From positions 44,392,001-44,456,000 of the forward strand of contig OZ241833.1 of the NCBI GenBank assembly GCA_965202585.1: a stretch of 64,000 bases of DNA, in the 5' to 3' direction. The notes below the pieces were generated by a model. That model had not been told where the DNA came from. It ran no database searches and worked only from the letters and a program-made list of their open reading frames with translations. Position numbers and translations under genes: made by a program. Source of the DNA: Thalia democratica. Taxonomy: Eukaryota. This document shows, piece by piece, positions 2,628-49,995 of the stretch; the first letter of the stretch is position 1, and each line of letters begins with the position of its first letter.

Positions 2628-5600
2628 TTATTTGTTTTCAAACTCTTCAAGGGTCTCCAGTAGCTTTTCGTTCTGTAAAATAATTTAATTTGTTTAAATC
2701 TATGCATTACTCGAAATACCATTTACAAAATATTTAGTATTAACCGTAACTGTGACAAAAATAGTTGTTACAGTTAACACAAGGCTGTTTTCATATATTA
2801 AACCTTGTGAAATTTTTTTCTTAACTTATTTGAAAATCAATATAAAACTGATTTAAATTTTATTCAAACACACCTCATTTAGTAGCTTACTCTCGTCATT
2901 TTTAAGGTTTGATAAATTTTCAACAGTTTTGTCAACTACCGCCTTCATTTTACCTTCGGATTTGGTTGCTAGTTTTTCCATTGCATTCTGTATTTACGTT
3001 GTTTCATTAGATTATCTTTAGAGTAGTAATATTAGTGAGTAACACCTAACAGACATCAATATAAAATAGTTTTTTTTTAAGTAAGTTTTATATACTTTTT
3101 TTAAGTTCGATAGTTTTCATAACACAAACCTTGTTACATTGCTTGGTTTTTTGAGGAAAAAAAAGGGATATACTTATTTTTATTTAAATACCACTTTTGA
3201 GCATACATATCACAATGTTATGTTTTTAGCAATTAGTAAAGCTTAACCGATTTTTAAAGGCAGCTAGCTTTCTAATTGTCAGGTAATAAAGCTTTTTCTC
3301 GCATTTAAGTTCTTTCAACTTGTCTCACCTTAATTTTAGCAGCTTGTTTCTGCTCACCACTTATATCTCCTTCAACTTCTTCCTCGAGACTTTCCAGCAT
3401 CTCGTTTATGGAGTTCTGCAACTTCTCAGGGATCTCGTCTTCATCTGGGAGTTCCTTCAAACCAGCTTCAACGCTCTCTTTGAAGTTTTCATTTGAATCT
3501 AATTCCTGTGGTTGACAATTTAGGAATTAAATTGTTTCGTGTTTGTTGTGAAAGTTTTACCAAGCGAGAACTTTGTTTAATTTCAGTTACACCGTGTTTA
3601 AGATAAAAAAACAATTAAGTGTTTAAAAATTAAGTGTTTAAACAATTAAGTGTTTAAAAATTTGATGAAAAATACAGTTTAAGAATTTATGTGATTATAG
3701 CTAAAACAATGTATAATAAGATATTAATACAAATTATACACTTACAAATGATTCAACAAACCTGTTTAACTTTCTCATCGATGCTCTCAATCTCCTTTTC
3801 ATCTTCCAAATCACCTTCTTCAATCTCACCAATCAGATCGTTCACCCTCCTCTCGATATTGATCACCTCACTGCTTCCACCACTTGAGGAGCAGCAGAGC
3901 ACCCTCACCTCGTAGTCCTCGCACACGGGGTGGGTGGTCTGCTTGCTTCCCTCGCACAACAGACCCTGATCGGTGTCACAGCTCACCACCTGCCACTCCT
4001 TGTACTTTTCAAAGTCCTCCACGTTGCCTCCCACAGGCCTGCACTCGATGTCCACAGGGTTGGAACAGACCATGTCGCCCATGTGGGCGAAGGTCTCGTT
4101 GTCGTCCCTGTACGGTAATTTAGGAGTATCAGAGTCGATCCATGATGTCCACTCGCAAGTGATTGTGGTTGTTTCTGGCACGGTTGTGGTTGGTACTGTA
4201 GTTGCCGGTGTCGTGGTAGTTAGGTCGTGGGTTATGATTTCAGGGGTGGTAGTTGTCGGAGCTACGGTGGTTGTTGTAGCTTCTGTTGTAGTGGTGGATT
4301 TTGTAGTGGTAGTAGCTTCTGTAGTGGTTGTAGCTTCTGTCGTTGTAGTGGTTGCTTCTGTTGTAGTGGTCATATCTCCACTTCCGCTGCCAGACTCTTC
4401 TTCTTCAGTCGTGGTTGTTGGAGCCACAGTAGTTGTGGTTGCTTCGGAAATGGTTGTCACTTCTACGGTCGTGGTAGGAGCTTGCGTGGTAGTGGTGGCA
4501 ACTGTTGTTGTCGTCGCCTCTGTGGTAGTAGTCATATCTCCACTGCCGCTACCAGATTCCTCTTCAGTAGTTGTTTCAGCTACGGTAGTAGTCGTAGGAG
4601 CTGCAGTAGTAGTGGTCGCTTGAGTTGTTGTGGTCGCCACAGTAGTTGTTACGTCACCGCTACCTGACCCAGACTCTTCTTCTGTTGTTGTAGTTGCAGC
4701 CTCAGTAGTTGTCGTTGGGGCTGGTGTAGTAGTGGCAGCTATAGTAGTAGTTGTTGCCTCTGTAGTGGTAGTTGCTTCGGTTGTAGTTGTTACATCTCCA
4801 CTACCTGAACCAGACTCTTCTTCAGTGGTTGTAGTTGCTGCCTCTGTCGTGGTGGTTGCTTTGGGAGTGGTGGTAGTGTCCTCTACGGTTGTAGTTGTTG
4901 GTGCCACTGTAGTCGTAGTAGCCTCAGTTGTTGTAGTAACTACGTCTCCGCTGCCCGAACCTGACTCCTCTTCAGTTGTAGTTTCAGCCACGGTGGTGGT
5001 TGTAGGAACCACAGTTGTTGTGGTGGCTTCTGTAGTTGTGGTTGCTTGTGTAGTAGTTGTTGCCACGGGGGTCGTTGCTTCTCCGCTTCCGCTACCTGAT
5101 CCAGATTCCTCTTCCTCAGCAGTTGTAGTTTCAGCTACTGTTGTTGTAGTAGGAGCGGCGGTAGTTGTGGTTGCTTCTGTAGTGGTTGTCGTTTGAACAG
5201 TTGTAGTTGTCGGAGCTTCAGTCGTCTCTTCACCGCTACCTGAACCAGAACCGGATTCTTCCGCTTCTGTGGTCGTTGTAGGAGCAACTGTTGTAGTAGT
5301 TGCTTCTGGATTTGTAGTTGCTTCTACGGTTGTGGTCGTTGCTTGAGTAGTCGTAGTTGCTACTGGGGTAGTGACATCACCACTGCCAGAGCCGGATTCT
5401 TCTTCAGTTGTGGTAGTAGGAGCTACAGTAGTCGTAGTTTGAGCTTGAGTTGTTTCAGCTTCAGTACTAGTGGTAGCTTCTGTGGTTGTTGTTGCCACAG
5501 GAGTGGTTGCTTCTCCGCTTCCGCTACCTGAGCCAGACTCTTCTTCTTCAGTCGTAGTTTCAACTACGGTGGTTGTGGTTGGGGCTTCTGTGGTTGTCGT

Positions 5601-8600
5601 TGCTTCTGTAATAGTAGCTGTCGTTGTCGTAGGAGCTACAGTTGTTTCTTCACCGCTTCCACTACCAGACTCTTCTACCTCTGTAGTTGTAGTTTCAACT
5701 ACTGTTGTCGTTGTCGGTGCTACAGTGGTTGTAGTAGCTTCTGTTGTTGTTGCTTCACTTGTAGTTGTAGCAACTTCTCCACTACCACTTCCAGATTCTT
5801 CATCTTCAGTTGTTGTAGTTGGAGCAACAGTGGTCGTTGTTCTAACTGGGGTTGTTGTTTCTGCTTCTGTTGTGGTGGTAGCTTCTGTTGTGGTTGTAGC
5901 AACTTCTCCGCTACCAGAGCCGGATTCCTCTTCGGTGGTGGTCGTAGGGGCCTGGGTTGTTGTAGCGGCCACAGTAGTAGTTGTTGCCGCTTCTGTTGTG
6001 GTTGTTGCCTCTGTGGTAGTGGTCATATCTCCACTACCGCTTCCTGATTCTTCCTCTTCTGTAGTTGTCGTTGGTGCAACAGTCGTAGTTGTTGCTGCTT
6101 CAGTAGTAGTAGTTGATTCTGTAGTGGTAGTCATTTCACCGCTACCGCTTCCGGATTCTTCCTCAGTAGTCGGTGCTGGCGTGGTAGCCACTGTTGTGGT
6201 AACTTCCTCGGTGGTTGTTGTTACTGGAACTGTCGTAGTTGTTGTTGCCATTCCGGTTGTTGTTGTAGCTGCTTCTGTGGTGGTAACATCCCCGCTACCG
6301 CTACCAGATTCCTCCTCTTCTGTCGTGGTAGTTGGAGCTACAGTTGTCGTTGTCGGTGCTACAGTGGTTGTAGTAGCTTCTGTAGTTGTTGTTGCCTCTG
6401 TAGTTGTAGTAACTTCCCCACTTCCTGAACCAGATTCTTCTTCTTCAGTTGTAGTAGTTGGAGCTACAGTGGTCGTTGTTCTAACCGGGGTTGTTGTTTC
6501 TGCTTCTGTAGTCGTGGTAGCTTCTGTTGTGGTTGTAGCCTCTGTCGTAGTAACAACTTCTCCGCTACCCGAACCAGATTCCTCTTCCTCAGTCGTGGTT
6601 GTAGGCGCTACTGTAGTTGTGGTTTTAGCTTGGGTAGTCGTTGCTTTGACTGTGGTGGTAGTTGCCTCGGTTGTGGTAGTTGCCTCTCCGCTACCACTTC
6701 CAGATTCTTCTTCAGTTGTAGTCGTAGGTGCCTGAGCTGTTGTAGTTGCTGCAGTTGTTGTTGTTCTAACAGGAGTCGTGGTTTCAGCTTCTGTTGTGGT
6801 GGTAGCTACAGTTGTTGTCGTTGCTTCTGTAGTCGTAGTAGCTCTCGTTGTAGTTGTAACTACATCTCCGCTTCCTGAGCCAGATTCTTCTTCCTCAGTT
6901 GTCGTAGTTGGCGCCACAGTGGTTGTTGTTCTTTGAGCAGTTGTGGTTCTTACAGGAGTCGTCGTAGTAGCTACAGTTGTCGTAGTTTCGACTTTGGTTG
7001 TGGTAGTAGGAGCTTCAGTTGTCTCTTCACCGCTACCAGATCCCGACTCTTCCTCCTCTGTGGTAGTGGTTGGCGCCACAGTGGTAGTTGTTCTTACAGG
7101 AGTCGTAGTTTCTGCTTGAGTAGTTGTAGTCGTAGATGCCACAGTGGTCTCCTCTTCGCCTGAGCCCGATCCAGACATCTCTTCAGTGGTGGTTGTTGGA
7201 GCTGCAGTGGTAGTTGTCTGAACCACTGTTGTTGTGGTGGGAGCTTCGGTGGTGGTGGTGGTTTGTGGAGGCACTGTTGGAGGCTTGGGCACGTCGTCGT
7301 TGGTGCAAGTTGGTGTGCATCCGCAAGATAAGACGTCTTCGTACTCGTATAATACTTCAGTTCCGTTCCTGCACTTCAGAGATGCGTACTTGATGTCCAT
7401 GGAAGTCGGATTGCAGCAGGAACAACCTCCTTCGCCTTTAAAACAAAAAGTGTTTGAAATATCTTCCTTATATGGTTAAAAAAAGCAATAAAAAGAGTAT
7501 TTGAAAACTTTAATTACTCATATAAAGATATATGAACTTGAGTATCATAATGACATCATAAGAAAACGAATAAGTTTAAATATACAGATATTTTATAAAA
7601 AACCAAACACACTAACCTTCAAGCGGTGAGTATTTTCCCCTGCAAAAACCGTCACAGTACGAGTGAGCTACCGTGTTAGTCGAAACGCACTCATCCACGA
7701 CGAGGTACTCAAGCGTTACGTGACGCTGACACTCGAAGCACTCGTTGTACTGACACTTGAGGCAGCACCCGTCATCGCTGGTTATGACGTCACCGCCGTT
7801 CGTCACGCACGAGTCGGCATCGAACGGAGGGCACGGGTTCTTGAAGCAGGTCTCCTCGTGGAATCCTGAATCTTCCGAGTGGGAGTCTCCTGAGCAGTAA
7901 CAGGTGTGGCATGCGTCGGGGTTCCATGAAGAACCCGGCTGAAAATTGGTTGTTTATGAACCAATAATTGTTTTTATAGTATATAACAGAGTAAATTAAA
8001 GTAACGTTTGCTTAACTAAAGTTTACAATAAACGGTACTGCGGTTGTAAATAAAAGCAGCTAAAAAGGATAATATAAGATAATGTATGCCCATCAAATTG
8101 AAATATGTGTACAGAATTTATGGGCTTTTCACTTTATATTTCGAAAACAACTATATTTATGTCTATATACTTTAAAATAATTAGTACAATAGCATTACAA
8201 TAACTGCATGAATTCAGACTTGACGAAAAAAAATACAGTTGTAATCCAACTTACAGGTTTGGCCATTCCGTCGTCGCAACATACATCATCGGGGACGCAG
8301 CTCAGCACCGGGCAGCAACCCTCAACAGTTTCAACAAGCACGTGACAAGCGGGACACGTGGGAATGACGAGCGGTGGGCAGGTGTAGTTGGTGTGCACTA
8401 TGTGGGTTCCACCGGCACCAGGCTTGTTCTTGCACACGAAACCCAAGCACGTTTTCTCGTTCTCCCGACTTTCTCCTATCTGAGGTGTTACGTTTTAGTT
8501 ATAGTTAATATTTGCTAGTTATTATATTTAACAGTGTGTGAACCGCGGTACTAAAAAGTTTGAGGCAATTTTTTTATTTTCTTGTTGTACTTTTAGCTTT

Positions 8601-11600
8601 ATATGTTTAATAGTTAGATATTTTCATTTAAGTTTCAAAAATCTAAAATTTTTGAACCATTACTACTACATGAACAATAAATTAAAAATTCAATGTTTTA
8701 ATTACTTAGCCTATTTCATACTTTTATAAAACAAAATGATCAAAAACCAAGCTTGATATACTTTAAGTATTGATAGTATTTAGCATTTTTTAGAATAGAA
8801 TAAAATCTTCAAAAACCAACATCCATGCACTTGTTGTCGCCATGGTGATGCGGCACGTGACAACCGGTTGCCACGCAACTTCCGCAGCAATCCCCTTCGT
8901 TTGTGACGTAATCGTGGCAGGGCGGGCACCTGGTGTCGCACTTTGTGACGACACAGTGAACGTTCAAACACATTGTGACGTCATCGTTTGTTTCCGGTTG
9001 GCACTGGCATTCGGTGCAAACGTTTGGTTTCCACTCGTCGCCAGGCTGTTAACAACAATAAACAAAATAAATTTTTTATTATTTTATAAAATTAGTAATA
9101 AACATTTTGTTCTCTAATATCAATATTTTTTCAGTTTTCGTTAGAAGTAACTCAGTTTAAAAAATATATAATGTTTTCCTTTGTATTCTTTTTGTACTTC
9201 CGATTTACAGACAAAGTTTACAAAAGGCCTACTTTAACATATAAATAACTAAGACAAATTTGAGTAGGTAAAACCTTAACAAGTATCACAAACTGGTTCT
9301 AACAAATAATCATCAAGCATGTTTTGTGTGGTTTTCCAATAAATAATTAATTTTTAGGGATGAACAACTTTTTTGAGTAATATTTTTGTATAGTTTATTT
9401 TAACAAAAACCAACATATTTGATGGTGTTGTTGGTGTAGCAGACATTTAATGGGGTGCATGTAGTATGATGGCATCCACAATAATCAACTTCTACAGTCA
9501 TCTGCTCACACGGTGAACAACTAACTACATCCGCCTTACATTTGTTACACTCTGTTTGTAAATATTGTTAATTTATTTACAAGTATTTTTAGTATTGTTC
9601 AACTGTTAATTTTATAAAGTCAAGTTTAGTTCTACTACAGTTTCAAATAAATTATAATATCCATAGTAATTCATCCATAAAAACATTACATCAGTGTTTT
9701 TAGTTTTAAGTCAAACAGAAGCAACAAAAACTTATCAAAAAGTCTATTTGATTAACTGCGCAAAGCTTTTCAAACAAAGAAAAATAAAATAACACGCACC
9801 ACATGAGTATTCAGGGCAACAATCGGTTTCCTGAGCAACAACGTGTTCAAGTGGTCCGCATGTAGGTGGTTTGGGACACGGGTTTCTGCCCTGGTCGCAT
9901 TTACATTTGTACTCTGGTATGCACTGGTCGTCCACTTTGGCTGGTACCTTTCCGGGTCCGCACGCAGGGATTTCCACTAGCGGGCAGTCCTCTGTGCCTT
10001 TCTCCATGTCGTAGTTGCATACTGTTATTAAAAGTTATCTTTTTTTTTTTTGATAATACTATTAGAGCTAGCTATTATTAACATTTATAGTTTTACTTTG
10101 ATTTGTGGTCAGGCTAAATGATGAAAACTTTAATTCTAAAAAGTAAACATAATTTATAGACAAAAACATTAGCAGATAAAACAGTTTTATACTTAATATA
10201 ACTATTTACATAAGAATCAGAAAACTTTAGTCATTTTACGCTAAAAGCTTGAGATGTATTGTAAGAGCGATAACATTTATAGACTTACAACTTATAAGCA
10301 TAAAATCCAAAAACTTGTTCACACTAACCGCACTCGTATTCGGGACAGCAAGGTTCTGACGTCACCACCCTCATCGCGTCATAGCAACTACCGCATTGGG
10401 GAGGGTTGGGGTCGTGTCCCTTGGGGCAGGACACCTTGTTCTCAACTATTTCGTTGCCATGCGTGCAAGACGCTATGGTGCAGTTGTCCACGTACCATGA
10501 CTCCCCTATCTGTTTCGGAATAAAAATATTTGTTAAAATGAGAACTCTGAATTTTCTTTAACATTTGTATTCATAAGACTTACTGGTGCTAGCTGTTAAA
10601 TGCGAAACAGGTAGTTATGTTTAAAGTTACTAATTTGATAAGTTATTTTAAAATCTTTTTTTTTAAGCAATCATAGTTAATTATTATTCCAATTTTTTTT
10701 TTGTAATATTCTAAGGCAACTCTAAAAGTTATAAAACCATTCTTTACCTAATTAAATTTTTTTTATTATTTCATAAGTTTTTAAACACCCCATACAGCAT
10801 TGAAAGCAATCATTGTACCGGTCTTCATATAAAGTTTGTAAATATAGTATATAGAACACCGAACTTCATAAGTGTTGTTGTACGCATCAATGCATTTTAT
10901 ATAACTAATTATCACAACAATGAACCTCGTAAGTGTTGTTGTACGCATCAATGCACTTGGTGTCGCACTTCCAGCAGCATCCGTCGTCGGTGGGGACGAT
11001 CTGGCCTCCCACCTTCTTGCAACCCTCCTCGTCGAAATGGGGGCAGTACTTGTGGTCGCAGGTGAACCTGTTGAAGCCCGTGTCCTCGTCCTTGCTCCAG
11101 AGACACACGCACGTGGTGCAAGAGTCCATCGGCCAAGTTTCGTTCGGCTGTTGATTTGAAAATAATGTCATTTAATAAAAGGAAGGTGTAGTTAAGATAG
11201 CTAAATACATATATAAACTTCTTGCAATAGAAAAAATTAATATTGAAAATTTAAACTTTTATTTAGTTATATGATTACTAGTATTTAAGGTTAGTAAATA
11301 AGAAATAAACCATAAAAGTTTATATCAAGTGTAAAGCTTTTTTGAATAATAAACAAAAAATAGGTTTTTTATCTAAATTACGATTGTTTATAAGAAACGT
11401 TATTTATATATAATAGATAGTTATATTTTATTATATTCTGCTAGCCTGTTTACACAAAAACAATAGAACAACTAACCTGTTTAACAAACATGCCATCAAC
11501 GCAGCACACGTCATCGGGCACGCACTCGTACTTGGGGCAGCAACCGTCCTGCACTGTGGTCAGTTTGTAGCACGAGTCGCACTTGACGTCTTCGAGCGGT

Positions 11601-14600
11601 GGACAGGACATGTCATTCTGCTGAACATTTGTGGATCCGTCAGGAAGGAGTTGGCAGGTCTTTGAAGAGCAAGATGAATGGTCTGGCCATGATTCTCCTA
11701 TCTGTAAAATTAAGCTTTAGCTAGTAAGTATGCTATACAATGACCTAAAGTGTTTTTAAAATGTGTTAGATTTTCTCTAATAATTTAGTTCATGAGTAAG
11801 TTATGTTTGCCTACTGTTTGAATATATTTTTTGATATTTATATCTCAATAAATTCTTATATGTTCGTAGCAACTGCTAAAAGTGTTATACATTAATACAA
11901 GGCACGTCTAAACATCATTCCGTATGTTTTCTATTAAACAAATTTCAAAAGGCACAAAAAGTTCTTATTACACAAACTAACATCCTTGCACTCCTTGTTA
12001 ACGCTGCACCCTGTAGCCTTGCAAACCCCGCAACATCTTCCCTCCTCATACACGAGTTCGTGACACGGAGGGCAGTAGACGTCGCAGGTGGTCTCGAAGC
12101 ACTCGTGGTTCAAGCATCCTGAATCCTGGTGGGTGTACGATCCTGTGCACTGGCAGTTGGTGCATGGACTCGGTTGCCACGTTTCACCAGGCTGTGTTGA
12201 GAATTTTTTTTTTTGTTATCAAACAATTTTTGTTTCTTTAATGAAACTGCTTATAAGTATTTTGCTTTTTAAAACTTGAGTAGTATTGACTAGATCTGCA
12301 AAACAGTATGGGAGAAAATTTGCAATATTTAAGAAAAATGTAATCCTTAGATTTTTCTACGTTTAAACGTAACAATATACAATTTTTCATAACCATAACA
12401 CAAACTGACCAGCTTGTCGGTTCCGTTAAAACTGCAAACGTTTCTGCTTTCACAACTATAATGTTCGCATCCACAACTGTCAACTGTGGTTACTTTCTGC
12501 TCACACAATCCACATTCCGTCTTGTCTGGTCTACACTTGTTGCATTCTGTTGTGATTCAAATTGATCAAAACCGTGCAAGGTGTTTTAATTTATGTGTTT
12601 GTGGTTAATACAGTTAAAAAAGTGTTGTAGAAAAAGCGAAGCAAAACAAATCAATAGCCCTATTTATCATGCATTACTAAAATGATTAACAAGTTTCTTG
12701 AATTATTTTTTTTTTTGTTCAACTGTAAACGAAAATTCAACTTTAAGTATCAAAGCAAACTTTTATAGAACGCTAAACCACTACAAACCACAGTGATACT
12801 CAGGGCAACAATCTGTTTCCTCAGCAACGACGTGTTCCAGTGGTCCGCATGTTGGTGGTTTGGGGCACGGGTTCCTTGTATGGTTGCAGTGGCAGTGGTA
12901 CTCCGGTATGCAGGTGTCCTCGTCAACTTTGACAGGAATGTATCCCGGTCCGCATTGAGGAACTTCAACTGTGGCGCAGTTGTCTTCACCATGACCGAGG
13001 TCGTAGTTGCATACTGGTGGAATTTATTTTATTTAGTTTTTTTATGAATTATTTTTGCATTAGATTATTAAGTTTTATAATAGCGGATTATAAAAGACAG
13101 AGATAGCATTTTTTCTCCATTTTTTCAAATGAAAAAATAAAAACTTAGTATGCTAAATATCGGTTTTGTAGTTTTATTACGTAATAATAACTTATTTTCA
13201 AGTTTTAATGACAAAAGTTTTAGCTTGGTATAAAATGTATTTTATGTTTATTGAAAAATCATCACCATAGCAACTAACCACACTGGTACTCCGGGCAACA
13301 AGGGTCCGATCCCCTCACCATCTCCGCAACGTGACATTTCCCACACTCGGGTATTCCCGGGTTGTAGTCGGCCCCGCAGTATTTAGGGGTGCACACAATT
13401 TGCTGACCCTCCATACAGCTGCATATTTCGCAAGTTTCTCCCTCCGGTATCCAACTTTCTCCTAACTGTATAAAATATTTTGAACATGAATTTAAAGAAT
13501 TTATTCTTGTTAACTTTATTGAAATACTTTATTTAAATTCTTGTTAACTGTATAAAAATAAAGGTTTTAAACTTCTACAAGTTTCAAATCGGGCTTGAAT
13601 TTTATACTAAGTAGATTTCAAACTTTAAAAATAAAGTTCTAGTGAATAAAATTTTAGAGAAATTCTTATAAAAGAGAAGAACATAAAACTATATTAAATT
13701 TTATGTAATACTATTTTGTCTTTCTCAAACAGTACGTATAAATTCTTACCTGAAGGATATCACCATTGTCAGCAACGCAGTTGGTGCAGTTACTAGTAGC
13801 AACGCACTCCCCTCCAACCAAAACGGTTCCCTCCGGACAGAAGCATCCCTCCGCTGATTGTTCCTCGTAACAGGGGATTCCCGATATGAAGTCCCCGCAA
13901 GTCTTTTCGCAATCTGGTTTGCACGCTTGGTACACACGGTCCGATGGACACTCGAGTGCTGTGAAATATTTACTTTTGGTAATTATTAATAACAAAACAG
14001 AAGTTTTAACTGTTATAATTAATCTTGTAAAAAAATTGCTTTAGTTTTAGCAGTTATTTATAATAAAAGTATATTATCTTCGGGGAAAAGTTTTAGTTGA
14101 AATTTTTAATAATTTTTTTTTCAAATTCACACAAGAACAAAGCGTAATTTGCTGTTGTTTGATTTTTAACTCGGATTAACTACGTTGTAAAACACCCTCG
14201 AAAAAATTTGTATTATATGTGTTGAAATACTAAAAACAAAGGTCATCAAGTAAGTAGTTGTTTAAATAAAGTGTTTAGCCTTATTTTGTTAAAGATTTGA
14301 AACTAAAATATCAAAGTAGCAAAGACAAAAAATAACTAACGACAAAGATCATCAGATCTCCAGTCCAAGCAAACTCCCTGTTTCAAACAAGCAAGAGCGT
14401 ATCCATAAAGAGCCTCGCATACAGAGTAATTCCTGCACTCCGCTGTATCGTATGTGCAAATTTTGTAAAACTGCTCCACGTCTACTGCGTCGTGGCATGG
14501 CTGTTGAAAATTTGTAAGTCGAAGTTTTAAATATTAAGACACATGGCAAAGTTAAATTACTGTAAAACTTTAAAAGGACAATTTAAGCTTATATTGTATT

Positions 14601-17600
14601 AATTACTATCATTACATATTACGGTTATAGAAAATAAGTACAAGTTTATTCAACATGTCAAAAATTTAAAAACTTTTTTGTGTATAACAAAAAGTTTGTC
14701 AAGAATTTAAATGCTAGATAAACTTTAAAATTGGCTATGGTTCATGATGTTTATCTACCTATGAAATAAAGGTTTTAACTATTTTAACACTACAAAGATG
14801 CAAAGATATAAAAGTATATATCAAATTAAACACATATAAATCACTAACCGCGAAAACATCGGACTTGAGTATCTCGCACTTCTTATCCGGCTTGGGACGC
14901 TCGCATGTTTGTTCCTCCTTCATGCAGTCCGTCTTGTTCTCGACTACCAACCACGACATGGCGAAATCGATCACTTCCAACTCGATCGTTCCCTCTCTGT
15001 TGGTCAGCTCGTCCGATTGGTCGTTGTTACACACTCCTGTATTTTGATTGGTTTATAAATATTAGTGGTAGGTTATTTAACGTTTAAACTAAGATCAAGT
15101 GAAAACCTCTAGTTATGTTTCGCTCAATTATTTTACAATAAGTTGTGTTTTATTTGAAATTAGAGACATAATTTATGTTAAAAACTGTATAGTACATGAT
15201 GGTCTTATTTTAAACTAAGCAAAAGTAAGTAAAAAATAGCAGCAATTTACAAATGATGTAATACAACTTAACAAGCAATTTTAACAAAAAGTTATTTAAA
15301 AAAAATTCACTAACCGCAAAGTCCCTCTGTTCTGTTGAAGTAGTGTTGCCACGGCACGGCCAAGCTCCAGCTGTAATCTTCTCCTGTGTACGTCAGAGTA
15401 AGGTCTATGCTCTTGATTGTGACGTAGAAGAGAGAAATTCCCCTCAGTTCCACGTGGATGCCTGATACGTGGGTTATTGGAAGAGTGGACCAATCCAACA
15501 GTGGACCGTTGTTGAATGAGTACTATAAAATGGAATTACAAGATTAAGATGTCAATGTAAAATGAGTACTGATAAGGTAATAAACTTTAGTATATCGAAA
15601 ATATATTTTTGCTTATTTTTTTTAGCCTGAATTGTTGAAAAAGTAGATTTTCGTAAGTTTCATTATTTTTTTAAGCCAAAAACTTAAAGGTTATCCAATC
15701 TCTTACAGCAATAACTATGCTTATCAGTCTTAAAATAAAACTGATAATATTTCAATCTTATATGCAAATAAACTAACAGTGTAGTTCTTGTAAATGATCA
15801 GTGTTGTCTCGTTGTATCTGATGTACATTTTTCTTGTACAAGTCGTATCCGGTGCCTCTGGGCAGGCAACATTGTCCATCCAGATCTAATTTTATACATT
15901 TATAGTTAGTTTCTGTTTTCTAATGTTGTGTTTTCAGTTTTTTACACTAAAAATATAACTAATTGACTACTAAATTTTAAAATATCAGTATGATAAATGC
16001 TGAATTTACTTTTAGAATTTTAAATTGGTTCTATATTACTTTAAGACAGTTTCAACGCTTTTTAAACATTTAAAATGAATATACAGTACATCAATAGTTA
16101 AATAACAACATAATGGTATAAATAATAAATAATTAACTAAATATCAAAACAAACTTCGTATTCGTGAGGCCAGTTGGAGTGGTGCTCGTTCATGTCACGT
16201 GACAATACAAATGTGCAGTTTCCTTGGAACGGGTAGTAGTATCCGTCGAATGTGAAAAAGTGAGGGTCTCCTTGACCAAAGCAGTAACCTTAAATATATA
16301 ATTTGTTTAAGACTGGCACTTAAAGTATAACTTTTATTTCAATAAACTTTATGGTTTATCGAAAGTGAAAGTTGAGGGTCTCTTTGACCAAAGCAGTATC
16401 CTATTATTAGTTTTCATTGTGTCTAAAACTAGTCAGTTAGAACTTATATACAATCTTATGAGTAAAAAAACGTAAATTTTAAGACACTTACAAACATCAA
16501 GTACATTTGCAAGTAAAAACCGTCATACAAATACAACAACTACCAACATTGACACTCCCATTCACAAGAGCATCCGTCCTCCTTCATGACAGGTTGGAAC
16601 CCGTTCCTGCAAACAGGCTTGTCCTCAGGTCTGCAAACTTTTCTGACATCCTCACTTTCGATGATGCAGCTTCCATCAGGCACCTCCAAGCAGGTTGATG
16701 TGACGCATAGTGATTCGTCACCGCGCATCGGCCACGTTTCACCCGGTAAGTGGTCTCCTCCCTGTGTGTAAGAAAGATTAAAATGTATTTATACCATACT
16801 AAATTCGCATGTTAAATTTCTTTGTTGGTGTGTTTGAGAAAAGAAACAATTTTTATTTTTTATAGATAACTAAACATTTATGTTTGTTAATAACCTCTGA
16901 GAACACTATTTTAAGCTTCAAAACTGACATGACTGTTTTAATATATTTTTACAAGCCGATCACAATTAGCTTTTATACTACTTCTATAGGTTTGTATTTC
17001 TTTCATCGTCATTTTGTTGCAGTTTTATACTATTGAAAGCAATACTTATAATAAAACATCACATACGTTAGAGTCGACGCATTTGCACGGTTCCGGTTGA
17101 GTTGTTGTTGTGGGGGCAGGTGTTGTGGTGGTCCTGGGCGTAGTGGTGGTCTTGGGTCTGGTTGTCGTGGTAGCCGGGATGGTTGTCGTGGTAACGGGGG
17201 GAGGGGTGGGTTTTGGCGGGCACTCGCTCACGTGTTTGCATTTCATTTGTTCATAATCGAACACCTCGTCTGATAATAAAAATTTTAGATGAGTATTTTA
17301 TTTAAATAAAGTTTAAAAGTTTTATCACAAAGTTAAAAGTTTTAATTACGTACAGTTTACTAATAATAAAATATTTAAATTTTTTATTAGTTACAAAGAA
17401 AATGTTATTACCATACGTACTCAACAAAAAAGTTACTCTTTTAATTAAACTATTAGTAAAAACCAGTTTTACATTTGGTACATAAATTAAAATATCATAT
17501 CTATATTTTTATCATTAATATAGAAAGACATCATTTAATAACAATAGTTATCAAACCGGGTTTGCATTCGGTGTAGCAGCCCTCCAAGTTCTTCCACGGG

Positions 17601-20600
17601 CAATCCTTGGGTTTTGGGTCGTCGCAGGTGGGTGGGCACGGGTTTCCACAGGGTTCGTACTTCCACGAGCACGTGCCGTTCACCCCGAAATCGGGGGTTC
17701 CCCACGTTGGGTCGTAAGTCTCGCACATGATGGGGCAAATTTCGTTGCTACGCCAACTGATACAAACTCCTGCCTCGCTACAAGCCTGTTGGGTGGTAAA
17801 GTTTAATTAGTTTTCTATTAAGTTTCTGTTTTATTTATTGTTTTATATAACTATTAAGAATGTCATATTGTTATTACGTGGGTTACTTTTTTATACATTA
17901 TTTACTACTTTCTGACACCTTTTTTGTGCCTTTTATGTTTATAGAGCGTTTATTGTAAATTTTTGACACATATAACACTTTTACATTAATTTTGTTTTAA
18001 ACAAATATCGTTATATATGTTTGTTTGATTTTTTTTTAATACATTATTGTTTAACACTTATTTATCCTTTAAATTTAAGTTTTTAAAAGTTATTTGTATT
18101 AGTATTAATTTACATTGACCTTTCACTGTGAGCCTTAAATAAGATTGTTAAAGATATCAAATAACTGAAGCATAACATTTAGCCATTCGACGAAAATAAA
18201 AACATACAACTATAATACAAACCTGCGCATATGCAGCCACTGCGTTACAGAAGCACTCGCAGTCCCCACCGTCAGTACACCCGCATGTGTCGAACAGGCA
18301 GTCCTCGTAGAAAGTCGTGGGGTCCACCACTGGGTGGCACTCTTCAAAAACGTCCCTGATGATCACCGCGCATTTCTCGTGCGCCCATTCTTGACGTTCT
18401 GGGTTCACCTCGCACGGGTTGCCCGGGGAACTGCCGTCTGGGCAGGACTCTGATGTCTGTTTAAGAATTTGTGTTTTTTATATACTTTTTTTTGATGTTA
18501 ATTTTTTTGTGTAGTAGTTGTTTTTTTTTAACTTGTTTCTTTATTGTTTATAAAAAAGACTAAAACATAATTTCAAATTTTTTTTTTCTGTTTCAGGTAA
18601 AATTAAATTCTAACAAAAACTTTTGCTTGAAACTTTGGCAACAAAACAGTTTATGCAAAACAATTAAACTTTCTGTGTGAAAAATTTACCTTCCAATCGT
18701 TACCGAAGTCAGTTTCTGAAGTTATTTGATCTCCGTCTCTTCCTTCGAAATCATTGGATGAATCTCCATCAAAATCTCCGCACAAGCCTCTGACCTTGTT
18801 CATATGTTTAGCTCCCAGTTTCACTTTTACCTGGAACAATGTTGATAGTTTAATCAGAAGTTTATCTAATGATAACAAAAAGTCCCAAGCATTTGAAATT
18901 CAAGATAAGTTTCAGTTGTTAATACTGAGTAAGCAACATCACTTTAATTCTACATAAACAATTTAGTTAAGTTTGCTACAAGCATTTTGTTTTTTTTTTC
19001 TCAATCACTTTTATACAATATTATGTAATCGAAGTTAGATAGTTCATGAAAAACTACGTAAATAAAACCTAAAACTAGCATGTCAGCAATCAAATTAGTT
19101 ATTAATTTTTCACAAACCTTGGTGCTGGAATCCCACATGACATCGATACCATCATTAGTTTCTATGATGTGGTAGATGGATCCCTTCCTGACCGTGTAAT
19201 ACTTTCCTGTGGGGATCTTTCCAAAACCACCGTTCTCTGCGTCATATTCCTGGATTATCTGTATGTTTTGTTTTATTACAAAAGTTTTGTTCTTATTGAT
19301 GGTACAAAAAGACATGCTTAAATTAACTGAAAATTTATATGGTATACAATAAATAAGTTTATTAATTTGGGTTTTAAAACATCAGTAGTAACGCTTAACA
19401 AAAAGAGCTTAATTCTTTTATTTTACGTTAACACTACACTTTATTTTTTTACTTATTCTAACAAAAATAAAATTTCAAAAACTAAACGTTATCTGCTGAG
19501 TTTTAAGCCTTATCTAAAAGTTATGACTAACTGGTTCATTTTCGCCCCTTGTGAGACGGAACACTTTGCTGTACCAGTAAAAGGTTACTGATTTGGAGCA
19601 GGTAAGATGCTTGTTGGCATCTCCACACGGTACATTCTCAACCTTAACCCTGAATGTTCCGTTGTTCTCTACCATCACGTATGAACAGTCTCCCTGTGAG
19701 AAAGTGATTTGTTATTATTTATGTTTTAAATGAAACTGTGTATTGATTAGTTTGGGTATAATTATTTTGTTAATAATCGTTATTTTCTATGATCAGTACA
19801 TTTTCGGAAATATATAAATATATTGCTTTGATTAGTTTTCAACAAACTAAAGCTCTTGTTTTCTTTTAAGTTCTAAACTAACTCTAACAAGTAAAGATGT
19901 TATAGCTGTAAGTCATGTTTGAGACAAACTTCTTAGTTTGAAAAATCAAACAAACCTGGAAATCGTATTCCCTGCCATCGAAAGTTTTGTAATGGGGATC
20001 TCCCCAAGCCGAGCACTCCTGGGGGCACTGCTTCTCCGTGCACACCCACGCTCCCCCTTCGCAAGTACAGTCGTTGCAATCCTGCTTGATGCTGCTTCCT
20101 GATTGGTGGATTTCACCGTTGTGCTCGCACGGACAATGAGATTGCTTCACACATTTACCTGATCTCTCGTCTGTTGTTTGGTTTATATATTAAAAAAAGT
20201 TTTTCAATTCTTTCTATCAGTAGAAATTATGTTAATCATTTTCTATATTGATAAAACCTTAATTCATCTTATAATCAGTTAAAATAACGGAAGATTTAGA
20301 TTTAAACATGTATGTATACTTTTACTGACTTTTATTTAAGCAAGATTAATTTTATTACCATTCATTTAATTAAATTTTTTTAACTTTTAAATTTACTTAT
20401 ATACATTTCTTTAATAAAATTTGAAAATTCAATATTTATGTAAATTATAGTACCAAAACATTTTTCAAATATTAGTTGTTAAAACTAATTACAAACTATC
20501 CTACCAAGTATTTTTCCTTTGGGACAGGCGCATCCAGGGGTACAATACTTCTCATCTACGGAGCAGAAAAGGTTGGAAGTCTGACAAGTTGATAGGCAAC

Positions 20601-23600
20601 CAACCCCCTTGTGGTTGTCGTGGCAACCCACGAATTCCATGGGGGCCTCGCACTTGGTCGGTTCCTCTTGGATGAGCTCACACTCAAGTTTTCCACCGGT
20701 GCACACGCTGGTGAAGTTGGTAAGTTGTTAATCTAGTAAGCTTTTTTTTATATTAGATACGATTTTACGAAAACGCATACAGAATTTAGACAGACTAGTA
20801 TATTATTTAAAAGCAAAAAAAATCAAGTTTCATTTATATAAAATTAAGTTATTCTTTCAATTTAGTTTAATTATTTAAACATAGTTTTAGGACTTCAAAC
20901 GTCTTTTTTACATAGTACTTTAAAGCAAGTTAATGTTTAAAAAGAATTTTAACTGAGCGCTGTAAATGTCATTAAAAATCGTTTAGGTAGCAAGTTCATG
21001 CTTTGCAACCGTAATGCAAAAAATTCCACAACCATAAAACCAACCAAGCGTATGAATCCCTTTCAACCTTCTCTCCTGGTTGGTAAACCTCACCGTTGTC
21101 ATAACACTGGCATTCTTCCTTAGCAACGCACTCCCCACCCTGCAGGAGGGTACCTGGTGGGCAGTAGCAACCCGGGTAGCAACCGTGGGTGCACTCACTG
21201 ACCCCCAGCATTTTGCAGGAAGATTGGCAGACCTCACCGCATTCGCTGTACATCAGACCGTCAGGGCAGGTTACAGCTGAAGAATATAAAATATTTTTAT
21301 AAGAAGTACAAAGTAGAAGTGTATTTAGTTTATATTAGGCGAGCTACGTATAAAACTTCACAATTTTCATGATGATGAATAAATTTATTTTTTATACCTC
21401 AAACTATACTTCTGTTAAACTTTCAAAACTCCCACAAAAAATAAATGTTGTAACCATTTGAATTGTTTTATGGGTTTTATAAAAAAAAGTGTTTTAACTC
21501 ACGACAAACAGTAGCGTTTCTCCAGTTATTAATAATTCCCTGTTTGGCACACTGCCTCGCGTAATCTGAAAATATTTCGCAAGCGCACTCCATTTCGTTT
21601 GTACATTCACATACATCTTGTCTGTTGGGAAAAATAAGAAGTTAATAGTTTGTCAAACATAGTAGATTTGGAACTAATCAGTATTTGACTTATGAATGAC
21701 AAGTACAAAACTGATTAAGTTTTTAGGTTTGAAAACTATTAAGATAATTCCCGTGGTTTTCATTCATAAAAAATTTTATCGAAAATTGACGACACTTACT
21801 AACAAAATAACAGTTAATACAAACTACTACATATATTAAAAAAAGAAAGAAAGAAGTTTAATTAAATAATACCAACTTGCACTTGGAGTAGGCGACGTTG
21901 GGATCAACAGCGGAGTGGCAACTAGCGAACACATCAGATTTCAAAACACCGCAAATTTTCTCCGCTTGATGGCGCTTCGTGACGTCATCGAGACACGTGA
22001 CTGGCGGGGAGGCGGGAGGCATGTCGCCGCAACTTCCTGATGCCTGCAAGCAATAAGTTATGTAAGCATTTTATTTGTCTAAAGGTATTATCGTTACTCA
22101 AACGTCGAAGCACTTTTTAGCAAGTGTTGACTTTTTTCTTAAGTTTTGTTCTTTCTAGAGATTTTAAGTTATTGTTTAAAATTATTTTAAACTAAAATTT
22201 GTCGTATTTATACAACCAAGAAAGTAGACTACACAACTATATTTAAAAAAGTAATATTGTTATTGTTAAAAACTTATCAAATGCTTTATTATTGTACTAT
22301 TTATAAACAAAACAAACCTTCCAGGAGTTACCAAAGTTGGTGGTGTCAGAGGTGAGGGAGTTCTTTGAAGTCCTGAGATCATCTGTTTTCAGCTGATTAA
22401 AGTTTCCGCAAAGACCGCACACCTTAGACTGCCACTCTGGTGCAAGCTGTTTGAGTGATAAAATACTAAATAGAGTGAAATATTGTATAGTAATAGCTTG
22501 GATAAAGTTTTTGTTTTACGAATAAAACTAACGAGTTTTGAAATTTGTCTTTTAGTGAAAAAATTATGAAAAAGTCTTAATGACCGTTTTCTAGTTTATG
22601 CTAATTTTATGACATTAAAATAAACGCTTGTCTAAGCCTGTTTTTAATGAAGATTTTAATTCAAACTAACTCTTAGATAGACACGCATTTCTCCGTCCCA
22701 TTCGATTTCTATTCCGTTGTCAGTTTTCAATAATGTCATCATATCACTGATACTTTCGACATTTACACCACCTAAGTTAAACAAGTTGTATCATTTTTAA
22801 GGCTACTAGTATTTAATATTTTTCAATAATTTCATCATATCGCTTAAGATTTAAACATTTACATTACCTAGGTTGATATTAAAACTCGAAAATATTGTTC
22901 GAAAGCTAATATAACTTTACTTTTAACGATTAAAATAGCTACTTTGGTAAATTTTAAACACTTAATGCTTTTCAAAATATTTACAAAACTTGAAGAAATT
23001 TAATAATAAGTATATAAAATAGAAAGAGTTTTTTTTTAAATGTTGATTTTTTTTTTATATCTTAAATTACAAACCATGTTCATAAGGTAACTCGATTGTA
23101 GCGCCATCTACCGAAACTACACCCTTCTGTTCCAATTTGAAAGTGGTCTGGACGCTTGGACTGGTCTTCAGTACCAAAGTCGCCGCTTTCACGCAAGTCT
23201 TGCCCGGCTGGTCACCACATTCCACGTTCTCTACTACAACCTGTAAATTAGTGAATATTTTTTTAATAAGTAGCTAAAAAACTAAGATGTTTTTGAATAA
23301 AAATAACTAGCTAAACTGCTATCACTTTGTTACAACTTTAACTAACAGAGGTGCAATAGCTAATCTTAGACTTACAGCGAGTTTGAACAATTATAAAGTT
23401 TAGGTTTAAGTTTAGAAATGTTTAAATAACGAAAAGTCAATATAAAACAGCAAAAGTGAACTTTTACTTCCCTGTACCCACAGTGCAACAATGTATTGAA
23501 AATATTATATGTATATAGTATTATTAAACAAATAAGACTATTAAATAAAACTAACAGCGAAAGTAAACTGATCCTTTCCACTACCCACAGTGCACCCATC

Positions 23601-26600
23601 AGTAGATAGAACGTACTTGCAAGTACCGCTGAACGTGTAATCGACCCCGTCAAACGTGTTGAAATGGGGATCTCCCAAAGCCGAACATTCACCCCAACAA
23701 GGTGTCGACTCGCACAACCACTCGCCAGAATTGCATGTGCTGATTAGGAAATTATTTTTTATAAGTTTAAGTAGAAAACTTTGATAAAAACAGGCTAATT
23801 TACTGATAACAATATTGAATAAAAATTATTTAAAAGTGTAAGGTAACAAAATAAGTTAAGTGTACTTGTTATCGCAAATGTTCATAAAATATTTTATATG
23901 TACCGTTTGAAATACCAAGAAGGTTTATGTGAAACTGTTAGATAAAAAACAAATATTTTTGCATACAAAAAAAAACGTTTAAGTGCCTTGATGTACAGAA
24001 AATCGTTAACAAAATAGGCTCATAAAAATTGTTAATACGAGTTAAAACCAGTTTTTACAGCACTTTTGAACTACCAAAAAATCTATTTGATAATAAAAGT
24101 GAATGTTTAAATCTTAAAAGTTGAACATCGTTGTTATATAACTATAAAATAATACACAAAAATTTTGTGCCCAATGTTGCCAATAAATCTTAACTCCAAG
24201 TGTCGACAATAGAGAGCAAGATGCTGATAGCGATTTAACACCCGTTAAGCAATCAAACACAAGCATTCTAGCGTGCGCAAACACAAGCTGAAATTTACAC
24301 AGGGGTTTGGAAATATAAAAGTTTGCTCAGTGGGTGTGTTAAAACTTTTACTTGAAATGAAGTTGTTTTGTTTGAGCTTTTAAGACGTGAGAGAGTTTGA
24401 ACGGTGTCACAATGAGCCAACGTCATAATCGTAATCGATATACGTCATAGTAATAATTGAATGCGTCGCAATAATAATTTGTACGCGTAGTTGCATAAGT
24501 AATAATTGACTTTGTGACGTATAAACTTAATTCTTATAATATGTTGTCCTGAAAGTTATTTAGCTTGAACTTCTAATACTCCATAGTAATAATTATTTGC
24601 TTAGCTAGTCAAACCAATTTTAACACTTTGACCTGTAAAAACGTGAGAGTGAACTGGAAATTATGTTAGTCAAATAAAAGAAGAACAAGTAAGCTGTTAC
24701 GAAAAACATCTTTGAACTTTGCCACTTCTTGTTGTAATTTAATCTGATTGGTCTTGTTTTGATCTGATTATATTCAAAGCTTTTAAAAAATTTGTAATAT
24801 ATGTATGTGCACAAGCTTTGTTAAAACTTAAAACCTTGATCAAAAAAGGAAATTAACATTTTAAAGATAATAACAACATTTTAAAATAAAATGTTTTTGA
24901 AAGAATTGTTAGTTGTAGTGTTAGTTAAACTTTTATAAGTTAAAGGATAACTATCGATTAGTTTATAAGTCTTTAATTGTTTATTTAGTGCTTTATACTT
25001 GGCTATTTTCGTTTATTGTTTCGATTTTAACTTAAAACAAACTTATTTAACTTCTAACTGAAAGTTAATAAAACCTATACACAAGTTATAATTCCAGTAA
25101 ATTCTCTTAACAACTGTAGTAAACAAACTGAAATGAAAGAGTAAACATTTTAAAATTAACTTTCCTGCGTCGTAAAATGACCATAAAAGTTTAAACCACG
25201 CGTAGAATACGTGATACTAGAAAGTTTGTTTTAGTTTGATGTTATAAAATGATTTATATGACTTGGTGTTTGAAATTTGCTTTATTAATTAACTTGACAA
25301 CTTAACATTTACAGTATGACAATTTAAACTTTATACATGTATATTTCAATAAGCACCCGCGTAAGGTAACTTATATCTAGGTTTGCAATATATACGATAA
25401 AAATAGATGATATCTTTAAAATTACTTGAAAATATAGGCACTTAAAACTTTATTGTTTAACAATGGAAGATATTTTCTAGATTAATTATAGTCTGCATAA
25501 AACTTTTCTCAGCTTAAAATGACCAGAAAACAAGTAAAAACGTTTTATAAAAATGCACAATTCGATATCTAGACAACACTTTTTTGAAAATTTTTTCAAT
25601 GTAAAAAAAGTTTGACAAATAAACGAAACAGTTTAAATTATTGAAACATAATTTAAGCATGTCAAAAACTTCTTTTATCAATTCTTAGTAATATAAAACA
25701 ACATTTAACTATACCATCATGAACACTTACTAAGAAACAAAACATAAACACTAAAAAAACAACTAACACGTCACAAAACCAACCATTGTTCGCAGCTTCC
25801 TTCCCTCACTTGCCCGGATGCAAACTCAACACCCTCGTGCACGCACTTGCACTCGTCTTGTGGCACGCAACTGTCACCTTCCAGCACGTGGCCGTCAGGG
25901 CAGAAGCAGCCGTCCAAGCAAGTTGATGGACAGTCCATCTCCTCGTCCTTGTTCTTGCAGGTTGGAACGCACGGGTTTCCGCACTCCTTGTACACCATGT
26001 TGGTCGGACACGTTTTTGCTGAAATAGTTAATAATAATAAGAAGAATTACTAAATTTACAAATCATGGTATAAAAGTGATGCTTAAAGAACTTTAAAAAT
26101 TGTGCTCAGTGCTAAGTAAAATAAAAAAATGTTTATTTATTTTATGTATTATTCATTTTCACTTAAACAACTTGAAAAACTCTGCTTAAATAAAAAGTTC
26201 TTTTAAACATCATTAAAAACACTTTTTCAAAAGTATTGTAGTGTATTATGAACACTCATAAGAAAGATATTTATTATAAAAAACAATTACAAGCAACTCA
26301 CGACAAAACTCGTCACTCCTCCACACTCCATCGAACACCCCATCACCCATCTGCACGCACATCCTCGAGTATGACGTCACAGCGTCGCACACACACGCCT
26401 CCAAGCGGCCGGATGCACAGCTGCATATTAATTGGACGCACATCTGTTCGAGCACTTCGGCTCCCACCTTGCAGTTGAATGATGAGCCCTGGTTGGCTAG
26501 ATACGTACAATCACGTGTCACGTTCTGTTGTGACGTAGTAATGATCAATTATGACATAGTAATAGTGTAATTTGACGTAATAATGATAAGTTATGTCGTA

Positions 26601-49274: not shown

Positions 49275-49995
49275 ACAAGCACTTAGATAGTATTTTTTTG
49301 CTTATCCAGTTCTCACTAATTCAATTCCTTGCTCATCTAGCCAGTTTCAGTCATAAATTAGACTAAATTAGTTAAGCTAGAAATAATTTTTTAACTTCAA
49401 AACTTAAAAAAGGTATAAACAATTTTTTACTATCTGTTTTGTATTTGTTAAATTGATTTCAAGCTTTATCATAAATTGTTTTCTTTGATTTTCTGTCTGT
49501 TTTACTTGTTTGTTTTGTTAAAATAAATTATGGTAACAAAATAGTGTACGTTTTATTATATGCATTGCATAATATAAAGTAAGTACATTAAAAAAAAAAA
49601 GAATGTTTAATCTTTATCATTTCATAATTACAAAAAAAGCTTGCCCAACATGGCTGGATTAGCAAGGATTCACTTTATTACTAAAATTGTTTTATTTAAA
49701 CATAGAATTTTTGAAAGTTTTGATATTGTCTTAGAGTTGTTCTTTTAATAAAAGAATATTAACTAAGTATTTTTATTAAAGAAGAAAACTGACTGTATAA
49801 ACAAAATTTTCATTCAACGTATTTCAGTGTAAATTTTTAAAGACTAAAAACAAGGCTATAAAAAAGTATTCATTTAAAATTTCAATTAAAAAAAATTGAG
49901 TAAATTAACAAATTCTTTATATTTTTCAGATATATGTATAAATATTATAGCTTTAAAAGAATTTGAGACAACATTATCAATTCACCCAACAAAAA

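Follow-up and report, generated by a model that had tools for sequence, protein, structure and literature searches.

The window analysed here, a stretch of 64,000 nucleotides from the genome of Thalia democratica (contig OZ241833.1), contains on its minus strand a gene that, judged by domain order and collinear similarity, is orthologous to tunicate Ci-GFM1, a gel-forming mucin that polymerises and binds chitin. The large 3' exon of this gene encodes an array of acid-flanked Ser-Gly (SG) clusters within a Thr-rich tract, and the possibility that these clusters are attachment sites for glycosaminoglycan chains is the main subject of this analysis. A preliminary description of the same DNA had placed the motifs at 4370-7190 and proposed a mucin-proteoglycan hybrid; the array is indeed located there, but the minus strand, the membership in the Ci-GFM1 family and the position behind the cystine knot had been missed. 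When 4370-7190 is read from the plus strand, the frames are riddled with stops, and this reading was discarded. The features of the gene, in window coordinates, are as follows.

8255..35644, minus strand: remaining part of the gene (open-frame segments; Pfam on exon pieces; tblastn of the metatranscriptome contig L004, collinear from 30185 down to 3762)
7617..7938, minus strand: exon with a VWC-like module and the first half of the C-terminal cystine knot (in-frame splice, RNA joints, VWC E 0.002)
3762..7435, minus strand: large coding exon of 3,674 bases (open reading frame; RNA joints 7434/7616 and 3504/3761; GT..AG introns on both sides)
4374..7175, minus strand: array of Ser-Gly clusters, predicted glycosaminoglycan acceptor sites (script count of every copy)
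3894..4151, minus strand: CysD (Mucin2_WxxW) domain directly after the Thr tract (Pfam PF13330, residues 1084-1169 of the open reading frame)
3329..3505, minus strand: next 3' coding exon, encoding an acidic, probably helical tail (RNA joints 3504/3761 and 2987/3329; in-frame splice)
2853..2987, minus strand: further 3' tail exon, mapped at its 5' side (RNA depth in bin 2897-3093; joint 2987/3329)

Structure and assignment of the gene

The contigs of two marine metatranscriptome runs were aligned to window positions 2700-8600 and established that the GFM1 gene of T. democratica is transcribed and spliced. The summed RNA depth reached hundreds to thousands in the coding bins, was zero in 2700-2896, 3094-3290 and 8019-8215 and near zero in 7428-7624, and four GT..AG introns could be delineated on the minus strand (7436-7616, 3506-3761, 2988-3328, and 7939-8254). 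The large minus-strand open reading frame (3753..7400, 1215 amino acids) ends in a stop at 3753, which was rejected as the end of the protein because the RNA joint places the splice donor at 3762/3761 and the stop is thus intronic; the protein therefore runs on into at least two small exons that encode an acidic tail. In order, the large exon comprises the 40 codons that complete the cystine knot, the Thr tract with its 21 clusters, the CysD domain (WxxW), and the start of the acidic tail. Several RNA joints within the tract (e.g., 4612/5623 and 5609/6399) were rejected as splicing events since their ends are non-canonical, and are read as short-read assembly collapse between repeats. Tails similar to that of exon 3329-3505 are present in L003 and L004, the orthologues from two metatranscriptome species, and the motifs PEEL/PEKL...N.M and DKTVENL are common to both of these and to the window exons 3329-3505 and ~2853-2987, whereas the tails in Clavelina and Styela differ, being long and Gln/Ser-rich.

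The part of the gene at 8255..35644 encodes, in this order, a low-complexity N-terminus, EGF-like modules, FN2, CBM14, D1, D2, D'D3, a Pro/Thr/Ser-rich (PTS) segment, D4, and VWC-like repeats. Pfam recognized fn2 (E 3e-10) and CBM_14 (E 4e-10) in the exons 31780-32040 and 30081-30320, respectively, and VWD in several window exon pieces, where C8- and TIL-like open frames were seen as well; the collinear orthologues L004 and P0156 each contain four VWD, four C8, and three to four TIL domains. The PTS segment between D3 and D4 is small, with roughly 50 amino acids in the open-frame segments at 17049-17297. The spliced junction into the large exon completes the cystine-knot pattern CxxC...CSCC...CGC. 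Because whole-protein Pfam scans of P0156 and L004 called neither a cystine knot nor a CysD domain, the knot was verified against solved structures of VWF, where the L004 segment just before the Thr tract matched the CTCK structure 4NT5 with an E-value of 3.5e-8. The CysD domain of the window was recognized as PF13330 with an E-value of 9e-18 and 65 bits, versus a cut-off of 22.4. At the presumed 5' end, positions 34598-35644 (minus strand) hold an open frame of 349 codons with a high content of Gln, Gly, Ser, His, and Trp; this low-complexity region is absent from L004, which is a 5'-truncated contig.

L004 is a 9.3-kb spliced metatranscriptome contig from a different species, and tblastn aligned this mRNA collinearly with the window exons from 30185 down to 3762, with roughly 40-89% identity per exon. 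For the part of L004 that precedes the tract, only three database proteins gave full-coverage hits:

Ciona intestinalis, 'von Willebrand factor-like', 2880 amino acids (P0155, XP_026693636.1)
Clavelina lepadiformis, 'von Willebrand factor-like', 4042 amino acids
Styela clava, 'mucin-5B-like', 3543 amino acids

The window exons are 48-51% identical to GFM1 of Ciona, Clavelina, and Styela over 1,900-2,245 aligned residues. Ci-GFM1 has been described to contain FN2, a chitin-binding domain, D1, D2, D'D3, a 50-residue PTS, D4, VWC, and a cystine knot, and it is the third most abundant protein of the chitinous envelope membrane in the Ciona gut (PMC6109156). As the length of 2880 amino acids and the domain list of the Ciona hit match those of Ci-GFM1, and the similarity to the window is collinear, the gene was assigned to tunicate GFM1. 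The sequences compared indicate that this orthogroup carries a large glycosylated tract and a CysD domain after the cystine knot, with the knot in an internal position and the acidic tail last, as seen in the window at 7300-7938 and 3762-7435, in L004 at 7300-8067, and at the C-termini of P0156 and P0157. The 2880-residue Ciona protein is probably truncated at its C-terminus, because it stops inside the first post-knot repeat (residues about 2820-2880) after one EETGSGE, whereas the models of Ciona savignyi have at least eight repeats as well as a CysD domain. XP_026693636.1 is flagged LOW QUALITY, and its length equals that of the published Ci-GFM1.

The periodic array of Ser-Gly clusters

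Each cluster comprises two to four acidic residues, (SG)3-4, and one to three acidic residues. A script count yielded 21 clusters, 18 of which contain (SG)3 and three (SG)4, which agrees exactly with the numbers in the preliminary description, as do the acidic flanks on both sides; the N-terminal flank of one copy reads EEM. The clusters hold 66 of the 67 SG dipeptides in the entire 1215-residue open reading frame, and they follow one another at distances of 36-60 residues (mean 46.4, sd 5.8), compared with about 40-55 in the initial estimate. The Thr-rich tract in which they are embedded spans ~1,000 residues with ~60% Thr, and would qualify as the long Pro/Thr/Ser-rich tract that characterizes gel-forming mucins. 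Its spacers are composed of 59.6% Thr, 13.7% Ala, 8.3% Val, 7.5% Glu, and 5.2% Pro. Ser is indeed almost confined to the motifs (66 residues inside the clusters versus 6 outside), and so is Gly (66 versus 1). None of 2000 residue shuffles of the tract contained an (SG)3 cluster, and the array of 21 is far beyond chance expectation. Moreover, a back-translated EEESGSGSG pattern matched 17 times in the large exon and once elsewhere when searched against the whole 802-Mb genome, and the reversed control of this pattern had no match across the same genome. The single match outside the exon was dismissed as spurious, since it contains an in-frame TGA; within the genome, the array of EEESGSGSG-type clusters is unique to the large exon.

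Codon usage was analysed by alignment of the ten core codons of the 21 cluster copies. Nucleotide diversity amounted to 0.58 at third positions versus 0.07-0.09 at first and second positions, and not a single amino-acid replacement was found among the 126 Ser/Gly codons. Variation at positions 1 and 2 had only two sources, i.e., a TCN/AGY switch at the middle Ser and a small number of substitutions in the acidic residues at the outer ends of the flanks. The first Ser of a cluster is always encoded by TCN and the last almost always by AGY, while the copies with four SG have the order TCN TCN AGY AGY, from which the three-SG forms can be derived by dropping one SG, with no need for a non-Ser intermediate. 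Tandem Repeats Finder detected periods of 126-144 nucleotides at an identity of only 67-77%, which implies that the repeat copies are old and diverged, and not a recent variable-number tandem repeat. The cluster motif is under protein-level selection, as had been proposed earlier on the basis of its varied codons.

The exons and introns of the gene were also covered, at about 90-95% identity, by a DNA run of a related organism (run X3). None of the ~26 best-supported variant positions listed for the tract falls in a cluster, and the clusters occupy ~24% of the tract; with 327 further variants beyond this listing, the avoidance of clusters is only suggestive. In the same run, in-frame indels were seen at 3870 (+3), 4194 (+3), 5886 (-3), and 8410 (-6), and a skip of 117 nucleotides, or 39 codons, at 4569-4687 suggests repeat-length variation among close relatives.

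The orthologues contain the following repeats and motifs.

Clavelina lepadiformis: 23 repeats of 31 amino acids, EEEGSGE in each
Styela clava: 10 repeats of 21 amino acids, EESGSGEE, with EESGSGSGD in the last repeat
Ciona savignyi (H2Z9C0): at least 8 repeats of about 39-45 amino acids, EESGSGE or EETGSGE
Ciona intestinalis model: breaks off in the first repeat, single EETGSGE
L004: repeats collapsed by an assembly gap, EEESSGSGD
L003: repeat of about 31 amino acids, includes EEESSGWE

The motif has not been lost in the orthologues, five of which (Clavelina, Styela, Ciona savignyi, L003, and L004) keep an acid-flanked SG cluster once per repeat unit. Behind the array, the Styela protein has a Thr tract devoid of SG, and the CysD domain comes next. 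Because the spacers differ in length and sequence, the repeat arrays were amplified separately in each lineage, and the element that these sequences conserve consists of the upstream acids plus Ser-Gly. These observations bear on the simplest explanation of the clusters, in which their serines receive ordinary N-acetylgalactosamine (GalNAc) O-glycans like the neighbouring Thr residues, and the motif is a passenger without a role in an amplified repeat unit. The motif does lie inside a classical mucin tract, and amplifying repeats can carry residues along. Nevertheless, units of 21, 31, about 40, and about 46 amino acids were amplified independently and with different spacers, and the cluster was kept in each of them; the DNA copies in the window are only 67-77% identical, yet their Ser/Gly replacements number zero; and Ser is otherwise avoided in the tract. 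A passenger motif is thus considered very improbable.

The occurrence of such arrays in other proteins was assessed in a control set of 272 VWD/CysD proteins (685,143 residues), which included MUC5AC, MUC5B, VWF, FCGBP, zonadhesin, and amphioxus proteins. No arrays were found among these 272 proteins beyond those of the tunicate orthologues, in agreement with the earlier statement that vertebrate gel-forming mucins lack them. A HMMER search against 1.84 billion representatives, from which the fragments leading to L003 and L004 were obtained, returned 381 hits, driven by the CysD domain and representing MUC5AC-like proteins; among the best 150 of these 381, neither a comparable array, nor at least two acidic residues followed by at least two SG, nor (SG)3 was found. 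A word-index search with the tract alone gave only one weak hit, H2Z9C0 of Ciona savignyi, and a search with P0032 returned only P0032 and P0040, since Thr-rich words swamp the index. In P0053, a mucin-5AC-like protein of 5607 amino acids from Xyrichtys novacula, residues 1296-4762 contain TEPSGEP once per repeat in 19 copies, and this single Ser-Gly periodicity is a weaker acid-flanked case in a vertebrate mucin, possibly an independent one.

Predicted glycosaminoglycan attachment

The acceptor Ser of the xylosyltransferase XT1 must be followed by Gly or Ala and lie in a peptide that is extended and unstructured; acidic residues are preferred at positions -2 to -4, the model acceptor being QEEEGSGGGQGG, and a wide range of acidic Ser-Gly peptides is tolerated (PMC5992326). 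Tandem Ser-Gly sequons, such as those of syndecan-4 (two) and glypican-1 (three), were modified near-quantitatively in vitro (PMC10570366), and the mapped chondroitin sites of C. elegans conform to E/D-G/A-S-G (PMC8418075). In the Thalia protein, all 66 Ser-Gly of the 21 clusters lie in a low-complexity, presumably unstructured Thr tract, and two to four Glu/Asp precede every cluster, as acidic residues do in all five orthologues. As predicted from their sequence, the clusters fit the published acceptor rule (PMC5992326, PMC8418075), to which the preliminary description had appealed in general terms, and the EEEGSGE of Clavelina fits it exactly. With their SG in tandem, the clusters also resemble the three sequons of the glypican-1 peptide. 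Moreover, the glycosaminoglycan pathway is encoded in the same genome, with the following components identified by similarity.

Xylosyltransferase C-terminal domain (Xylo_C)
CHGN-family chondroitin enzymes (1e-102)
GT43 glucuronyltransferase (4e-75)
GT64/EXT-type domains (3e-94)
Fam20 kinase gene (single locus found)

Since the motif fits the acceptor rule and the pathway genes are present, the clusters are proposed to be xylosylated and extended, i.e., to carry xylose-linked glycosaminoglycan chains in vivo, with an estimated probability of about 0.55. This estimate was kept near that value because proteoglycan prediction from motifs only is ambiguous (PMC8418075). The hybrid character claimed in the preliminary description thus passes at the level of motif, selection, orthologues, and pathway, and the chains themselves are beyond sequence.

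Several points weigh against the attachment of chains. According to the proteoglycan field, motifs alone mispredict proteoglycans (PMC8418075), and the study of the Ciona envelope membrane reports no glycosaminoglycan or proteoglycan for Ci-GFM1 (PMC6109156). The residue at -1 of the first Ser of each cluster is Glu, not Gly. Depending on the species, a cluster has between 1 and 4 SG, with the most in this genome, and triple SG is not the conserved unit. Finally, the density of GalNAc on neighbouring Thr residues could block the xylosyltransferase, or GalNAc transferases could claim the serines.

The acidic character of the region also allows a mechanical explanation, in which the clusters are un- or lightly glycosylated flexible hinges that cut a stiff brush of Thr-linked glycans into segments of ~45 residues, and in which Ca2+ bound by the Glu patches serves to pack granules or to cross-link the gel ionically, without any long chain. 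The near-confinement of Gly to the clusters and the strongly acidic composition of the entire large exon (196 Glu+Asp versus 28 Lys+Arg) agree with this explanation, as does the regular spacing, which would suit mechanical segmenting, and the conservation among orthologues is equally compatible with it. However, a hinge would tolerate exchanges to Ala, Asn, Thr, or Gly, yet none of the at least 63 cluster Ser codons has been replaced, and a Ser directly before Gly combined with upstream acids in every orthologue is the signature of the transferase and not of a generic linker. Moreover, in a Golgi that contains xylosyltransferase, exposed sites would be hard to leave bare in view of the broad acceptance of XT1 (PMC5992326). 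Hinges devoid of long chains are therefore regarded as an unlikely explanation.

Phosphorylation by a Fam20C-type kinase at S-x-E/pS would convert the same clusters into Ca-binding patches of the form EEEE-pS-G-pS-G-pS-G-E, similar to those of caseins and SIBLING proteins. The last Ser stands in an S-G-E context in 12 of the 21 clusters, from where hierarchical priming could reach the upstream serines, and a Fam20-family gene is present in the genome. The remaining 9 clusters, on the other hand, end in S-G-D, and across the orthologues the context is S-G-D (L004), S-G-W (L003), or S-G-E, so that S-x-E is not the conserved feature, which is the combination of upstream acids and Ser-Gly; in addition, the lone Fam20 locus may encode the xylose kinase Fam20B instead of Fam20C. 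Phosphorylation is possible for part of the sites, and as a general explanation of the array it is decidedly unlikely.

If the clusters do carry glycosaminoglycans, a peptide O-xylosyltransferase in the Golgi would add xylose to one or more serines per cluster, after which the linker tetrasaccharide would be built and extended into chondroitin/dermatan or heparan sulfate, while the Thr blocks would acquire GalNAc-type O-glycans. Each mucin subunit would thereby acquire an arm of the bottle-brush type, in which up to 21 sites, with 66 candidate serines, would be available to long polyanionic chains. The post-knot topology of the tract is shown by the predicted protein sequence. As two subunits are joined by the knot that precedes the tract, the arms would stick out at the nodes of the disulfide-linked polymer and not lie in line with it, which is their arrangement in MUC2 or MUC5AC. 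The likely outcome would be a charge-selective and strongly hydrated gel, either in another secreted mucus or on the chitin that forms the scaffold of the gut envelope membrane; this gel would govern swelling, lubrication, and the binding of cationic proteins. The acidic residues decisive for heparan versus chondroitin lie C-terminal of the sequon (PMC10570366), and with just one to three acidic residues C-terminal of each cluster, a call between these chain types from sequence was dropped. The wider proposal, which may be held at roughly even odds, is that tunicate GFM1 is a true glycosaminoglycan-bearing gel-forming mucin and the first case of a proteoglycan among mucin polymers of the VWD/cystine-knot type, with a tunicate-wide design, serving as the charged matrix of the chitin gut barrier or of feeding mucus.

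Relation to known mucins and proteoglycans

The Thalia gene shares with Ci-GFM1 (Nakashima et al. 2018, PMC6109156; XP_026693636.1) the domain order from FN2 to the cystine knot, the small PTS of ~50 amino acids, and about 51% identity over 2,245 aligned residues. The Ci-GFM1 paper describes only this small central PTS, and no post-knot tract, CysD domain, or glycosaminoglycan (PMC6109156); the Ci-GFM1 model has one EETGSGE, whereas the Thalia protein has a post-knot tract of ~1,000 residues with 21 clusters of three to four SG. MUC2, MUC5AC, and MUC5B share with tunicate GFM1 the scaffold D1-D2-D'D3 ... D4-VWC-CK (CK, cystine knot), a Thr-rich O-glycan tract, and the CysD domain, in agreement with the MUC5AC-like proteins that were the best HMMER hits to the CysD region. 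In vertebrate mucins, however, the PTS and CysD domains are located between D3 and D4 instead of after the cystine knot, and FN2 and CBM14 domains are lacking.

Among proteoglycans, glypican-1 (three tandem Ser-Gly), the syndecans, bikunin (EEEGSG), and serglycin likewise present disordered Ser-Gly with an upstream acidic patch, and the EEEGSGE of Clavelina contains the EEEGSG of the XT1 model acceptor. These classical cores have one to a few sites, or one continuous run in serglycin, in contrast to the 21 periodic clusters of predicted sites in Thalia, and in none of them do the sites belong to a polymer of the VWD type or to a mucin tract rich in Thr. Mucin-type O-glycans are combined with chondroitin or keratan sulfate on a single core in lubricin (PRG4) and in the aggrecan-type hyalectans. 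On their extended cores, the hyalectans are rich in both mucin-type O-glycans and sites for glycosaminoglycans (PMC8418075). Hyalectans and lubricin are not homologous to GFM1: they have no VWD, C8, TIL, cystine knot, or CysD domains, are not assembled into mucin polymers by disulfide bonds, and show no alternation of single Ser-Gly sites with Thr repeats. The invertebrate peritrophins and intestinal mucins combine CBM14 with a mucin tract in the chitin barrier of the gut, as does tunicate GFM1, but insect peritrophic matrices lack gel-forming mucins (PMC6109156), and peritrophic-matrix proteins have neither the VWD scaffold nor the cystine knot.

The GFM1 gene family is already known, and its orthologues are present in databases under generic names. 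The paper on Ci-GFM1, a later review of the Ciona gut, and the main survey of mucin evolution mention no glycosaminoglycan, proteoglycan, or post-knot tract for GFM1; a literature search for any glycosaminoglycan-bearing gel-forming mucin found none, and searches on the proteins of salp mucous nets and on GFM1 expression in the endostyle retrieved nothing relevant. What appears to be new is a gel-forming mucin with a conserved, periodic acceptor array of the proteoglycan type, predicted on a post-knot arm, and such a glycosylated arm would be a different way to build a mucin network. Gel-forming mucins and proteoglycans are usually held to be two separate classes of extracellular polyanions, and a conserved, periodic array of canonical acceptor sites would, if true, join both classes in a polymerising mucin from the animals most closely related to vertebrates. 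It would also revise the picture of Ci-GFM1, which has been described with only a 50-residue glycosylated domain. Moreover, fixed charge and swelling would provide a mechanism for the exclusion of microbes by the chitin-mucin gut barrier of tunicates. As the charged matrix of this barrier or of a feeding mucus in the vertebrates' sister group, GFM1 would form a bridge between peritrophic-type matrices, proteoglycans, and vertebrate mucus. The hypothesis can be tested directly in laboratory ascidians, including Ciona, Styela, and Clavelina.

Three metagenome contigs from Tara Oceans (L005-L007) were rejected as evidence on the tract, as they contain only the last CysD exon of a close relative. 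In these contigs, a separate small exon encodes the end of the CysD domain together with the beginning of the tail (L005:640-831, L006:1366-1557, and L007:639-830); it is 76% identical and is preceded by AT-rich non-coding sequence. Since the end of the CysD domain is a separate exon there and is uninterrupted in the window, an intron splits this domain in the relative or paralogue. Finally, on the plus strand of the window, positions 49963-51216 hold a single open frame of 417 codons that is hydrophobic at its start and again in a segment close to its end, and looks like a separate single-exon gene for a membrane or secreted protein.

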